A DNA stretch of 6,035 bases, taken from Octopus sinensis (Eukaryota). A program made the position numbers and the translations under genes. The notes beneath the pieces were generated by a model. The model did not search any database and was not told where the DNA came from. It saw only the letters and a list, made by a program, of their open reading frames with translations. Below are positions 751-6,035 of this stretch, in pieces. Within the stretch, counting starts at the first letter, position 1. Every line of letters begins with the position of its first letter. The stretch spans positions 1 through 6,035 of the forward strand of contig NW_021829391.1 in assembly GCF_006345805.1 (NCBI RefSeq), in the 5' to 3' direction.

Positions 751-760
751 TGTGTGGTCT

Positions 761-839
761 GGTCTGGGAATCGAAACTGCGACCCTCCAACGAGGAAGAA
801 ACGGTTATAATCCTAGTCACTGGGCCATTGTGCCTCCAC
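761..839 (-). mobile_element. Truncated, diverged tRNA-derived SINE head, same family as the element at 5244-5561
   Basis: Aligns to 5489-5561: about 5 mismatches in the first 30 nt and 5 in the last 28 nt, with a diverged middle 6 nt longer. Minus strand has an A-box-like TGGCCCAGTGA (827-817) and a B-box-like AGTTTCGATTCC (778-767). No body or tail follows. Confidence 0.88.
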
Positions 840-1268: not shown

Positions 1269-1300
<32 letters not shown>

Positions 1301-1399
1301 TAATAATAATAATGATAATAATAAAAATAATAATGATTAATAATGATAATAATGATAATAATAATAATAAAAATAATAATGATAATAATAATAATAATA
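1269..1399. repeat. Imperfect (AAT)n trinucleotide repeat with GAT/AAA interruptions
   Basis: Read directly. Confidence 0.95.
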
Positions 1400-1508
1400 C
1401 AGTTGTCTGCATCAACAACGTCAACAACAAATGACTTTTGTGTCGGTAAAAAGATTGTACAGCGACTGCATAGACAGAGCCTGGGTCGTTGGTAGTAATC
1501 AAAGTAAA

Positions 1509-1918
1509 GTATATGTATATATGTGTGTGTGTGTGTGTGTGTGCACGTATGTACGTCTGTATGTATGTATGTATGTATGTATGTATGTATGAGTGTATAT
1601 ATGTATATGTGTGTATGCATATGTATGTGTATGTATATCTATACATACATATGCATACATACATATATGTATCATTTATGGACATATATATGTATGTATA
1701 TATGCATACGCATATACATGTATAAATGCACACACATACAAATACAAACACACACATATATGTATACATATATACATATATATGCGTATATACATATGCA
1801 TATCTCTATGTAGATATAGATATAGATATAATCTATATATTCACATGCAAGTGTGTACCTATATATATATAGATACATAGATAGATATATATGTGTTCAT
1901 ATATACATATATACACGT
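1509..1918. repeat. Compound microsatellite: (TG)n, (TATG)n, (CA)n, (TA)n, (TAGATA)n
   Basis: About 400 bp of mostly alternating purine-pyrimidine sequence. Confidence 0.93.
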
Positions 1919-2223
1919 AATATGAACCTATGTTTTATAGTTTTGAGCGAAACGTAGTTAGATAAGTAAAGCGAAGATTTCAATGGCTTTTAACTGAAGG
2001 AAATCTATTCAGGTTTTATGTTAAAAAATAAAATGATAAAAAGCTAAATCCGTATTGTCAGAATATTCACTTTTTCACCCTTCCACCTTCTACACGAACA
2101 CGCGCGCACACACAGACAGATGCACACATGCATACACACCTACAAGCAGAATATGTCGACTTCAAAAATGAATGGCTAGATGAAGTATATCTCTCTATAT
2201 TGACTAATACACATTGCACGTAC

Positions 2224-2241
2224 CTATATGAATGAGTGTCG
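2224..2241 (-). CDS. Candidate 18-nt microexon CGACACTCATTCATATAG (phase 1-1, adds TLIHI plus junction codons)
   Basis: Long T-rich tract ending ttacctcacccattcctcag| (AG at 2243-2242) and donor AG|gtacgt (GT at 2223-2222). Phase 0 contains TAG and phase 2 gives a stop on joining to 1233. Only phase 1 stays open into the 1233-1133 exon. Confidence 0.4.
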   Translation of the reverse strand, partial: RHSFI

Positions 2242-2399
2242 CTGAGGAATGGGTGAGGTAAATAATAATGATTTAAAGAAAAAAAATATATGAAAGGAAA
2301 AAATAATAAAAATATACTTTGAAGAGAAAAAAAAACCAAACTTTAGAGAATAAATAAAAGCGAAAAGAAAATGGAAGTATATTAATGAATTAAGGAAAG

Positions 2400-2740
2400 G
2401 AGTAGGTGGAAGGGGCTGTGGAGGAGGGGAGGAAGAAAAGGATATGGTGGTGATGGTGGTGGCGGAGGAGGAAGAGAAGGAGGAGGTTGTAGAGGAGGTT
2501 GTAGAGGAGGTTGTAGAGGAGGTTGTAGAGGAGGAGGAGGGGAGGAGGAAGAGGGGAGGGAGGGGCGGTGGGAAAATGAAGAAAGAAGGAACGAACGAAA
2601 AAGGAAATGATAAGGGTGAGGAGGAAAAATTGGGAGGGAAAAGGAAGAGGAGGAGGAGGAGGAGGAGAAGAAGAAGAAGAAGAAGAAGAAGAAGAAGAAG
2701 AAGAAGAAGAAGAAGAAGAAGAAGAAGAAGAAGAAGAAAG
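2400..2740 (+). repeat. Purine-rich block: (GAGGAGGTTGTA)4 at 2480-2527, (GAG)7 at 2647-2667, (AAG)23 at 2668-2736
   Basis: Units counted directly from the sequence. Confidence 0.95.
2553..2572 (+). other. Canonical G-quadruplex motif GGGGAGGGAGGGGCGGTGGG
   Basis: Four runs of at least 3 G with loops of 1, 1 and 4 nt. Motif only; folding not shown. Confidence 0.6.
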
Positions 2741-3063
2741 ACGCCATTTTTTGTTAATTAGTAATCACAATTAACAATATATTAAAAAGATCAAAAAGAA
2801 AAAAAGATCAAAAAAGAAAAGAAAAGTATTTTTAGATTAACAATAATTTTTAGAAATCTTTTGGAGATAAAATTGCGAGGAAATTATTAAAAGAAAAGGG
2901 AAGAGAAAAAAATAATAAAAAAATAAACGAAGCAAAAATGAAAGAGAGAGAGAGGCAGAAGGTAAGCAATATAAAACCTATGACATTCATTGTTCATTCG
3001 AGAAATATTAATATTTATATTTTTGGCTAGTAGTTTTTCTTTTCCTTTATATTACTTTATCTT

Positions 3064-3113
3064 ATTTATTATTATCATCATCATTATTATTATCATCATG
3101 ATCATCGTTGTTG

Positions 3114-3154
<41 letters not shown>

Positions 3155-3253
3155 TTATTATTCTTATTATTATTATTATATTATTATATCATCATGATCA
3201 TCTTGTTATTGTTTTATTATTATTATTTTATTATTATTATTATCATTATTATC

Positions 3254-3286
<33 letters not shown>

Positions 3287-3315
3287 GTATATATTATATT
3301 ATTTTATTATTATCA
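3064..3315. repeat. Imperfect (ATT)n/(ATC)n trinucleotide tract
   Basis: Read directly. TATCATCATGATCATC occurs at both 3091-3106 and 3187-3202. Confidence 0.94.
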
Positions 3316-3400
3316 CTTTCTCGTTTTGATTAGTTTCTTCCAACAACGTTTTACTTTTCAACGACATTTTCATCATTGCCAACCTCTTTCCTCTCTCCTT

Positions 3401-3470
3401 CCCCTCTTTCTCTCTCTCTCTCCCCCTCTTTCTCTCTCTCTCTCCCCCTCTTTCTCTCTCTCTCTCTCTC
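3401..3470. repeat. (CT)n-based tandem repeat with 22-bp period, CCCCTCTTT(CT)nC, about 3 copies
   Basis: Copies at 3401-3422, 3423-3444 and 3445-3470. Confidence 0.9.
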
Positions 3471-3508
3471 CATATGATTCCACCTCTCTTCTCAATTGCT
3501 TTTCTTAC

Positions 3509-3601
3509 TGTAATTATTTACTGAATATCCTTCAATATAATTATGCATGAAGATTTTCTTGCTAACTCTAAATTTCATGCTATTTTCTTTTTTTTTTTCC
3601 C
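3509..3601 (-). CDS. Candidate 93-nt internal exon (phase 1-1): EKKKENSMKFRVSKKIFMHNYIEGYSVNNY
   Basis: Branch-point-like CTAAC (3640-3636), C/T tract, acceptor cacacag| (AG at 3603-3602) and donor CA|gtaaga (GT at 3508-3507). Only the phase-1 frame is open. An upstream CAG (AG at 3625-3624) is an alternative acceptor. The frame depends on an 11-nt A run. Confidence 0.33.
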
Positions 3602-3654
3602 CTGTGTGGCGGTAGGGGAAGAGCTGGAAGGATGGGTTAGCTTTCATTGATATC

Positions 3655-3851
3655 GTCTTCATCATCATCAACAATATTTTCGTCGTTGTCTTTCTCTTCT
3701 TGCTCCTACTCCACCTCCTCTTCCTTTTCATCATCATCATCATCTTTTTCTTTTTCCTTTTCTTCTTCTTCTTCGTCTTCTTCTTCTTCTTCTTCTTCTT
3801 CTTCTTCTTCTTCTTCTTCTTCGTTTTCCTCTTCTTCTTCTTTCTTCTTCT

Positions 3852-3883
<32 letters not shown>

Positions 3884-3950
3884 GTCTTCCTCTTCTTCTT
3901 CTCTTACTTCTTCTTTTCTTCGTCTTCATCATTTTCTTTATCCTCGTCAT
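3655..3950. repeat. Pyrimidine-rich (CTT)n/(CAT)n/(CCT)n tract with perfect (CTT)15 at 3777-3821
   Basis: Read directly. Confidence 0.95.
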
Positions 3951-3991
3951 AATCATTACCAGGACCGCAATCATTCAGCAACAATGTCAGC

Positions 3992-4395
3992 GTCATCATC
4001 ATCATTAGTATCCTCATCATCCCCATCATCATCATCATTGTCATCGTTGTCGTCGTCGTCATCACCATCATCATATCCATCATCGACTTCACCACCACCA
4101 TCATCATCATCCCCATCATCATCATCCCCATCATCATCATCCCCATCATCATCATCCCCATCATCATCGTCGACGTCGTCGTCATCATCGCCATCATTAT
4201 ATCCATCATCGACTTCACACCACCATCATCAGCATCACTATTATCACCATCATCATCATCATCATCATCTTCATATGCATCATCATCTTCATCATCTTCA
4301 TCATCATCACCAGCATTGTAGTCATCATAATACTCATCTTTATCATCATCATCGTCATCATCATCATCATTATCATCAACAACAAAATCATCATC
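3992..4395. repeat. Imperfect (CAT)n tract containing (CATCATCATCATCCC)4 at 4099-4158 and an internal duplication offset by 126 bp
   Basis: ATATCCATCATCGACTTCAC is identical at 4073-4092 and 4199-4218. Confidence 0.93.
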
Positions 4396-4558
4396 TTTCA
4401 TATTGTGTTATTTTGTTTGTACTTTTGTTTCTTTTTTTAGCGGGTCGGGTGGTATTTCCTTTATTTTTTATACTTAGTAATTTATTACACATATATTCGT
4501 TATATCTAGCAGTTTAGGCAGCGGAGCTGTTGCTGCTGCAGCTATTCCACCTACTACA

Positions 4559-4561
<3 letters not shown>

Positions 4562-4611
<50 letters not shown>

Positions 4612-4648
4612 GACTACTGTTGCTGCTACATCGACGACGACGACGACG
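4562..4648. repeat. (ACT)16 at 4562-4609 and (GAC)5 at 4633-4647
   Basis: Counted directly. Confidence 0.95.
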
Positions 4649-4751
4649 GGAAATCCAAGAATATCGAAGTGGCTGCAATCATCTCCTGCTGACAGTAAAC
4701 ATATTCTAATATATTAATAAGCATATATACACACGTAGAATTGTGCGTCAG

Positions 4752-4952
4752 TGTATATATATATATATATATATAATATATATATAATGACTCATACGTA
4801 GCCAGACTGACATAACATTTAGAAACATCATTGGAACCAGTTAGATGTATACATATCTACACACATACATTCATACATAGATACGTGTGTGTATATATAT
4901 TTATATATATGTGTGTGCATGTGTGTTGTATATACACACATGCATATGTACA

Positions 4953-4984
<32 letters not shown>

Positions 4985-5150
4985 ATACACGCATGCGTAA
5001 TTACGTAAACACATGCTTATATAATGTGCCTGTATATATACATACACACACATTGCAACCATACTCATACATGCATCTGCATTTATTCATGTACATGTGT
5101 GCGTGTGTATGTCTTGTATACGTATGCGTGCCTATATGCTTCTACGTACT
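4752..5150. repeat. Compound TA/CA/TG microsatellite mosaic, including (TA)11 at 4754-4775 and (AT)12 at 4953-4976
   Basis: Read directly. Confidence 0.9.
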
Positions 5151-5233
5151 GTCTTAATGTCCGTCTTATTGAAGTGGGTTTCACAAAACCTGGAATGACA
5201 AATCTGATCAAATGATGACAGCTATAACCTATC

Positions 5234-5243
5234 ATAGGTACTA
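5234..5243 (+). repeat. Left copy of putative target-site duplication ATAGGTACTA
   Basis: Identical to 5801-5810. Lies 7 nt outside the T10 run that marks the SINE A-tail. Confidence 0.8.
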
Positions 5244-5561
5244 CATTTCATTTTTTTTTTGCCCTTTTCAAGCCTAGCCAGGCTCATGGACTCGGTTTCC
5301 CGGTTTCTATGGCGTATGTATTCCCCCCAGCTGGACGGGACGCCAGTCCATCGCAGCCTTACTCAAGAAACAGGAAGAGAGAGTGAGTGAAAGTTGAAGC
5401 GAAAAAGTACAACAGGAGTCGCCACCACCCACTGCCGGAGCCTCATGGAGCTTTAGGTGTTTTCGCTCAATAAACACACACAACGCTCGGTCTGGGAATT
5501 GAAAACGCGATCCTCCGACCGCGTGTCTGCTGCCCTAACCACTGGGTCATTGCGTCTCCAC
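5244..5561 (-). mobile_element. Full-length tRNA-derived SINE (element 1, about 318 bp), octopus-type; family name not confirmed
   Basis: Minus strand: tRNA-like head starting GTGGAGACGCAATG with A and B boxes, a 124-nt middle, a 103-nt 3' domain shared with element 2, then an A10 tail and TGAAATG. Confidence 0.9.
5495..5549 (-). promoter_or_regulatory. Internal Pol III promoter of element 1: A box TGACCCAGTGG (5549-5539) and degenerate B box GTTTTCAATTCC (5506-5495)
   Basis: Resembles type-2 Pol III consensus (TRGCNNAGYGG, GGTTCGANNCC) with tRNA-like spacing. Confidence 0.7.
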
Positions 5562-5800
5562 AAAATGCACCCTTTTTAAAGCCTAGCCAGGCTCATGTGC
5601 CCGGTTTCCCTGTTTCTATGGCGTATGTGTTCCCCCGGCTGGACGGGACGCCAGTCCATCGCAGCGTTACTCGTTTTTGCCAGCTTAGTGGACTGGAGCA
5701 ACGTGAAATGAAGTGTTTTGCGTCTCCCCGTCCAGGAATCGAAACCACAATCTTACGATCATGACGCTGACACCCTAACCACTAAGTCACGCGCCTCCAT
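5562..5800 (-). mobile_element. Second tRNA-derived SINE (element 2, about 239 bp), related subfamily with a different middle
   Basis: Head ATGGAGGCGCGTGACTTAGTGG...GATCGTAAGATTGTGGTTTCGATTCCTGG resembles the 3' half of eukaryotic tRNA-Arg as I recall it. The 3' domain 5570-5672 is about 91% identical to 5262-5364. Ends GGGTGCATTTT directly against the 5' base of element 1. Confidence 0.9.
5735..5789 (-). promoter_or_regulatory. Internal Pol III promoter of element 2: A box TGACTTAGTGG (5789-5779) and B box GGTTTCGATTCC (5746-5735)
   Basis: Close to A/B box consensus with tRNA-like spacing. Confidence 0.75.
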
Positions 5801-5810
5801 ATAGGTACTA
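5801..5810 (+). repeat. Right copy of putative target-site duplication ATAGGTACTA
   Basis: Immediately abuts the 5' end of element 2 and is identical to 5234-5243. Confidence 0.8.
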
Positions 5811-6035
5811 TGAAAATATATAAAATCCCTAGTAAGTTTAGCATGTTACATGACGCACATATACAAATGAAATCCATGCCTGCATATGTATATGTTTATC
5901 TAAGCTTCTGTGCATACATATGTAGGATGGATATCGATGCTTGGGTCAAATAAAAAAAGTATGCACCGTCGTAGAGACCATTTGCCTGTTGATGTAAACA
6001 TCTCTTCGAAAATCCAAGAAAGAAATGAAAACTAA

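Follow-up and report, generated by a model that had tools for sequence, protein, structure and literature searches.

The tandem pair of SINE-like elements at positions 5244 to 5800 most probably entered the genome as one unit, in one event of target-primed reverse transcription that yielded a fused cDNA; we put the probability of this reading at roughly 0.85 to 0.9. A single integration is favored because one duplication surrounds the pair, neither element has a duplication of its own, and the upstream element is without a tail. The window, meaning the whole 6,035-base stretch of AT-rich eukaryotic DNA that was analyzed, consists of microsatellite arrays over about one-third of its length, and its GC content climbs to ~52% at 5244 to 5800. 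Both elements lie on the minus strand in the same orientation, with A upstream and B downstream in the sense (5′-to-3′) order. The pair and its flanking repeats are laid out as follows.

5562 to 5800, minus strand: element A ("element 2" of the first-pass annotation), 239 nt, made up of a head that carries polymerase III (pol III) boxes, then a short body, then the shared 3′ module
5244 to 5561, minus strand: element B ("element 1" of the first-pass annotation), 318 nt, in which a head and a longer, unrelated body are followed by the shared 3′ module and C-A10-TGAAATG
5801 to 5810: target site duplication (TSD) copy on the 5′ side of the pair (sense), ATAGGTACTA on the plus strand and TAGTACCTAT on the minus strand, flush with the 5′ end of A
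5234 to 5243: TSD copy on the 3′ side of the pair (sense), exact ATAGGTACTA, flush with the 3′ end of B

Elements A and B are noncoding, with stops in all frames, and their lengths fall within the SINE size range of ~100 to 600 nt.

The repeat ATAGGTACTA occurs exactly twice in the whole window. The bases adjoining the two copies differ (C or T before, C or T after), so that the repeat cannot be lengthened, as the first-pass annotation had claimed in describing it as flanking the entire pair exactly and without extension. The repeat is perfect, is not microsatellite sequence, and is the longest string common to the 30-nt flanks of the pair. When A or B was considered alone, its 30-nt flanks shared at most 4 nt, which is the chance level; the earlier statement that element 1 has no separate duplication was thus borne out for B, and the same is true of A. 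As a background, the window holds ~13 unrelated, nonmicrosatellite 10-mer direct-repeat pairs at spacings of 150 to 1500 among ~8 million position pairs, which corresponds to a chance rate of ~1.6e-6 per position pair. At that rate, the probability of a repeat falling within a couple of bases of both element ends, each defined independently, is ~1e-4 or less. The pre-insertion empty site would carry one ATAGGTACTA and would read ...ctatcATAGGTACTAtgaaaat.... The sequences beside the two copies have a certain likeness: CATTTCA, next to the left copy on the plus strand, matches ATTTTCA (the reverse complement of the plus-strand TGAAAAT beyond the right copy, 5811 to 5817) at 5 of 7 positions, which may be chance.

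The point at which the two elements meet, and the ends that they present there and at the far side of B, are the following.

5561 to 5562, minus strand: the A-B junction, with A ending in T (5562) and B beginning with G (5561)
5562 to 5565, minus strand: T4 in the sense direction at the extreme 3′ end of A, a candidate pol III termination run or a 4-nt linker
5244 to 5260, minus strand: 3′ terminus of B, A10 (5260 to 5251) followed by TGAAATG (5250 to 5244), the putative start point of first-strand cDNA

In the sense direction, the junction at 5562/5561 reads ...AAAAAGGGTGCATTTT followed directly by GTGGAGACGC..., and the surrounding 28- to 30-nt junction sequence is GGGTGCATTTTGTGGAGACGCAATGACC. 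There is no A-run, no flanking sequence and no duplicated target between A and B. A ends in ...GGGTGCATTTT (GCATTTT), that is, in the last base of the shared module (TGCA) followed only by T4 and then by the first base of B. The elements had been described as abutting without a spacer; the junction is indeed direct, but it would be equally correct to regard the four T's as a 4-nt spacer. B is 5′ complete at the junction, where it starts with GTGGAG. The A10 of B is subterminal, the last 10 nt of the element being two AAATG units, and the terminus is A7(AAATG)2 rather than plain poly(A). No A-run, AAATG or terminal TGAAATG was found in A. Two earlier observations, that only element 1 has an A-tail and that element 2 ends in GCATTTT on its sense strand, were confirmed, with T4 forming the very last bases of A and the A10 of B preceding TGAAATG.

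The first-pass annotation noted that the end of A is as expected of a pol III-terminated RNA. A does end in T4, which is its one sense T-run of at least T4 and makes up its final four bases, and this run may be the pol III termination run of the A RNA. The argument is weak, however, because B's own RNA must have read through an internal T4 (within 5505 to 5495, in its box B) and an internal T5 (5406 to 5402, in its body). The T5 had already been recorded at these positions; the T4 is additional. Three T-runs of at least 4 therefore lie between A's promoter and B's tail (the junction T4 and the T4 and T5 of B); two of these are in B, which was evidently mobilized all the same. The T4 argument does not discriminate between a template jump at this locus and an existing dimer, since the T4 and T5 of B were read through either way.

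To describe the 5′ portions of the elements, we list the promoter-like boxes of A and B together with a third head found elsewhere in the window.

5779 to 5789, minus strand: box A-like motif of A, TGACTTAGTGG, with one mismatch to TRGCNNAGTGG
5735 to 5745, minus strand: box B-like motif of A, GTTTCGATTCC, 44 nt downstream of A's box A
5539 to 5549, minus strand: box A-like motif of B, TGACCCAGTGG, from the motif scan
5495 to 5505, minus strand: box B-like motif of B, TTTTCAATTCC, which holds the sense T4 and lies 44 nt downstream of B's box A
760 to 838, minus strand: a third, solitary head of the same type, which starts with GTGGAGG and has box A at 827 to 817 and box B at 777 to 767

Both A and B thus have the layout of a type 2 pol III promoter (box A and box B, ~30 to 60 nt apart) with a 44-nt spacing. 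In the window, the box A pattern had 5 matches versus 0.88 expected from shuffles, and the box B pattern had 3 versus 0.23 expected. The heads of A and B are 66% identical to each other, and the third head is 59 to 62% identical to them. The third head is without the shared 104-nt tail and runs straight into (CA)n, part of the (CA)n/(GT)n sequence at 705 to 756; the head of B is likewise followed by a short GT-rich run (GTTGTGTGTGT). The third head indicates that this head type, starting with GTGGAG, is probably repeated in the genome; within the 6 kb there are three copies of the head and two of the tail module. All three heads begin with (G/A)TGGAG (ATGGAGG in A and GTGGAGG in the third head), and this common start fixes the 5′ end of B at 5561. 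We regard A and B as putative pol III SINEs on the basis of the box motifs, the repeated modules and the duplication. A tRNA-derived head was rejected as a shown identity: ARAGORN found no tRNA and Rfam returned nothing, even at an E value of ≤10, in the 651-nt region from 5200 to 5850, and the heads are tRNA-like only in their promoter boxes.

The 3′ portions of the two elements are more closely alike than their heads, with a common module at these positions.

5570 to 5672, minus strand: shared 3′ module in A, a presumed LINE-derived tail, identical to that of B at 94 of 104 positions (90%; E value of 9e-37)
5262 to 5364, minus strand: shared 3′ module in B, 90% identical over ~104 nt to that of A

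The bodies of A and B are unrelated save for a short motif, AAAACAC...GCTCC. The first-pass annotation spoke of two different SINEs; this holds for the central bodies, but the elements are related in their heads and 3′ modules. From their sequences, A and B appear to belong to a single SINE group, representing two of its families or subfamilies and having a 3′ module in common. In-situ tandem duplication was ruled out, because the heads are only 66% identical and the bodies are unrelated while the tails are 90% identical; the same contrast points to two distinct source RNAs that fit the same reverse transcriptase (RT). The module is presumably the LINE-derived part recognized by the RT of one partner LINE, as suggested by its being common to A and B, and the two elements probably use the same LINE partner. 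With a common head type and tail, both RNAs would be templates of the same LINE RT, which makes their co-mobilization easier to understand. When the shared module and the heads were folded as RNA, no structure common to A and B emerged, and z-scores were unremarkable except for that of B's tail (−2.85).

One further similarity links the two elements. The 10-mer GGAGACGCAA occurs exactly on the minus strand at 5550 to 5559 and at 5718 to 5727, such that the first bases of B, G-T-GGAGACGCAA, recur in A. The copy in A sits just downstream of A's box B, and the probability of such a recurrence by chance is ~0.07 for these two elements. It could be a coincidence, or else a trace left by a previous fusion of head and body as A evolved.

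Taken as a fused integration, the locus can be accounted for by four steps. A LINE endonuclease would first nick the plus strand of the window at ...GGTACTA^TGAAAAT. The cDNA would then start at the 3′ end of the B RNA (...A10-UGAAAUG) and reach the true 5′ end of B (GUGGAG...). At that point the enzyme would keep its cDNA, move onto the 3′ end of an A RNA ending in ...GGGUGCAUUUU, and copy it to the 5′ end of A. A second nick, 10 bp off, would leave the single ATAGGTACTA duplication. We infer that a template jump joined the two elements at the level of RNA and cDNA. If the RT jumped on reaching the 5′ end of its first template, B should start, as it does, where A and the third head start, at (G/A)TGGAG. 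That A carries the whole module and then only T4, with no A-run or AAATG, indicates that A was not primed from a tail of its own. Unlike an L1-type site, the nick site ACTA^TGAA is not T-rich; together with the TGAAATG terminus, this suggests that the partner LINE is of the "stringent" type, which recognizes the 3′ module rather than a poly(A) tail.

These steps are held with differing confidence. As the origin of the junction, we lean toward a template jump, either here or in an ancestor, in which the RT left the B RNA at its 5′ end for the U-ended 3′ end of the A RNA. That the jump occurred in the very event that made this locus is a tentative proposal with somewhat less than an even chance. 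The fuller proposal, held a little more loosely still, is that the locus arose directly from an end-to-end jump between two SINE RNAs, both of them full length and with a LINE-recognition module in common, carried out by a non-L1-like ("stringent") LINE RT. The pair had earlier been called a likely single chimeric retrotransposition. The fused single integration is supported by the one 10-bp TSD, the 5′-complete B and the absence of a priming tail from A; a one-off event at this locus is one candidate, beside a copy of an A-B dimer that already existed.

The alternative that survives best is that the locus is an ordinary retrocopy of a pre-existing A-B dimeric SINE, either a master gene or a composite family, so that the junction is old and present at many loci. 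Such a dimer would have been transcribed from A's promoter through T4 into B and mobilized via B's tail; this differs from the preferred reading in timing and not necessarily in how the junction first arose. We consider it quite conceivable, at slightly under even odds. A single duplication, a full-length A and a full-length B are equally expected from it. A pol III transcript of the dimer must pass all three T-runs of at least 4, but the internal T4 and T5 of B show that short T-runs do not block a retrotransposition-competent RNA, and the junction T4 need not do so either. No second dimer or junction was found in the window despite the presence of the third solitary head, although this is a very small sample, and a random window meets a genome-wide family more often than any one-off event. 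Dimeric SINE families formed from two monomers are common, examples being Alu (FLAM plus FRAM) and Urop (PMC13023118), and mollusc SINEs often exchange modules (PMC4758252).

The join could also have been made at the DNA level at a source locus, if B had inserted in or after the tail of a resident A and a read-through transcript had then been retrotransposed from B's tail, with no jump at all. SINEs do land in the tails of other SINEs, and the GCATTTT upstream of B could belong to B's target. The missing B-specific repeat does not exclude this course of events, because the 3′ copy of B's duplication would be lost if reverse transcription started at B's tail. Against it, B must have landed 0 to 4 nt from the end of A's module and in the same orientation, the composite locus must have been an active source, and read-through of the extra T4 is needed; moreover, the predicted nick site ACTA^TGAA has no preference for SINE tails. 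By rough rates, we would expect this route to be several-fold rarer than a direct jump, and we consider it improbable.

Two independent insertions are a still poorer account of the locus. The first would have made the ATAGGTACTA duplication, and the second would have arrived at the boundary between element and duplication, or between A and B, without a duplication of its own. Duplication-less or endonuclease-independent insertions exist, and an extra A (5800) lies between the duplication and the TGGAGG of A. The second event, however, must have been blunt, with neither duplication nor deletion, and placed with single-nucleotide precision beside the earlier insertion. Both elements have the same 3′ module and presumably the same LINE, whose machinery made a 10-bp duplication here. 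The flanks of either element alone share no more than the 4 nt noted above, and A is without a priming tail of its own. We regard this course of events as very improbable. That there is no retrotransposition signature at all, the 10-mer being a chance match in a repeat-rich window with ~13 unrelated 10-mer pairs at comparable spacings or the pair having been moved by a DNA transposon or a segmental event, is scarcely credible given the rate of ~1.6e-6 per position pair, the flush fit of a nonmicrosatellite repeat to both independently defined ends, and the absence of terminal inverted repeats at the ends of the pair (longest common string, 4 nt), which argues against a DNA transposon.

The proposed fused cDNA has parallels in several known systems. 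Buzdin et al. reportedly described, in 2002 and 2003, chimeric retrocopies that arise from template switching by a LINE RT. Chimeric retrocopies within one duplication are established for U6/L1, U6atac/Alu and Alu/L1 (PMC4476161; 10.1101/2025.02.02.635956), and the Alu/L1 chimeras are a precedent for several transcripts in one duplication (10.1101/2025.02.02.635956). Template switching has been reported for the L1, L2 and RTE clades, and stringent LINEs (L2 and RTE) give rise to U6 pseudogenes only via template switching (PMC4476161). Like these LINE-RT chimeras, the A-B locus has two transcripts in the same orientation, a direct join and one surrounding TSD. Also as in these chimeras, only its 3′ component has a priming tail, and its 5′ component, if T4 is the RNA terminus, is a full-length small pol III transcript with a U-run at its end. 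It differs from them in being made up of two SINEs, with a SINE in place of a LINE as first template; in the copying of that template all the way to its 5′ end, without 5′ truncation; and in a nick site and a terminal TGAAATG that suggest a non-L1-like partner. Human chimeras with a SINE as the first template (U6/Alu) are very rare and have not been reproduced experimentally (PMC4476161), which is a point against the jump reading here.

SINE-containing chimeras are also found in Magnaporthe grisea, where WEIRD-MgSINE (with 12-bp repeats) and WEIRD-MgSINE-MGL (with 14-bp repeats) are explained by one or two template jumps of the LINE RT, and where MINE (WEIRD-MGL) is present in 31 copies (PMC2104539). 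In those elements, as in the A-B pair, a SINE forms part of a multi-transcript chimera with a single direct repeat around it. The SINE in those chimeras is 5′ truncated, however, and its 5′ partner is a nonmobile noncoding RNA, whereas A and B are both full-length SINEs with the same tail.

Dimeric SINEs offer a second set of parallels: Alu (FLAM plus FRAM), Urop (PMC13023118) and the Twin SINE of Culex (cited in PMC3272025). They resemble the A-B pair in consisting of tandem, head-bearing monomers in which a 3′ remnant of the left monomer serves as a linker. The left monomer of the A-B pair, in contrast, keeps a complete LINE-type 3′ module and T4, and the three T-runs of the A-B unit would be unfavorable for a pol III master, unlike those families. 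Dimeric SINE families move as one unit with one duplication; membership in such a family needs a junction that recurs at many loci, and the window has a single A-B junction. Families that share tails are known as well. SmaI, HpaI and OS-SINE1 share a tail with RSg-1, HaSE1 and HaSE3 are likewise tail sharing, and both cases have been explained by RT template switching (PMC3272025), as has the "jigsaw" exchange of modules in mollusc SINEs (PMC4758252). Like the members of tail-sharing families, A and B differ in body and have the same ~104-nt 3′ module (90%) and related heads; unlike those families, which are known from comparisons of family consensus sequences, A and B are joined to each other within a single insertion.

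End-to-end template jumping by the R2 RT was reportedly seen by Bibillo and Eickbush in in-vitro biochemistry of a site-specific LINE. A jump from the 5′ end of one RNA to the 3′ end of another without homology has the geometry of the 5561/5562 junction. The R2 system is an in-vitro one with a site-specific LINE, whereas the enzyme proposed for the A-B locus is a putative LINE RT.

Searches for further copies of the pair or its parts were made in several collections. The junction 18-mer TCTCCACAAAATGCACCC had 24 and 18 matches in metagenome and prokaryote genome contigs, respectively, all of them chance matches and none with SINE homology by blastn; an 18-mer pattern is too short for metagenome and prokaryote genome collections of such size. 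Shared-tail 19-, 20- and 25-mers had 0 matches in viral contigs. Among 5.8 billion proteins, nothing scored with a 96-amino-acid open frame that crosses the junction on the plus strand, and nothing scored with the other five frames of the pair, concatenated. None of 20 ORFs of the window had an exact match in the protein collection. A full-text search with SINE 17- and 18-mers returned 0 papers. The same was true of a teleost-like motif, GGACTGGCG.CC.GTCCAG, and a likeness to it was dropped.

Elsewhere in the window, very large simple-repeat arrays occupy ~1269 to 4618, with a strand switch near 3000. Arrays to the left of 3000 include (AAT)43, (TATG)n, (GAGGAGGTTGTA)4.6 and (AGA)24, and those to the right include (TTA)85, (CT)n, (TCT)65, (TCA)135 and (CTA)23; across the switch, GC skew goes from +0.9 to −0.7. 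The AAT and AGA arrays are mirrored by TTA and TCT arrays, which accounts for many long imperfect inverted-repeat pairs, and the mirrored arrays could be an old inverted duplication or merely independent microsatellites. Dozens of Rfam "miRNA" matches (mir-297, mir-466, mir-3149 and others) at 660 to 930, 1510 to 1920 and 4730 to 5115 were rejected as low-complexity artifacts and not genes, because every one of them falls within a TG/TA microsatellite and comes far short of the gathering score. On the minus strand at 3904 to 4401, a 165-amino-acid open frame made up almost entirely of Asp/Glu and Met runs derives from a (TCA)n/(ATC)n array; it had no exact match in the protein collection and very probably does not represent a gene.

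Chimeric retrocopies and dimeric SINEs are already well documented, and entry as a fused unit is a known route to composite SINEs; either outcome, a jump at this locus or a pre-existing dimer, leaves current understanding unchanged. What is slightly unusual here is that a SINE is the first template, that both partners are full length and that the same 3′ module is present in both. RT template switching is the usual explanation for composite and dimeric SINEs, and for tails and bodies that SINE families have in common; it has mostly been drawn from family consensus sequences. Should the junction prove recurrent, the locus would document one more dimeric SINE family in a repeat-rich genome. If the jump took place at this locus, the end-to-end joining of two full-length SINE RNAs within one duplication would be a direct natural snapshot of the template-switch step. 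It would be all the more telling for having a SINE as its first template and a 5′ partner with a pol III-type U-run at its end. A dimeric SINE would then have been recorded at its birth, in one insertion that still shows, at the junction, the pol III U-run of the second template.
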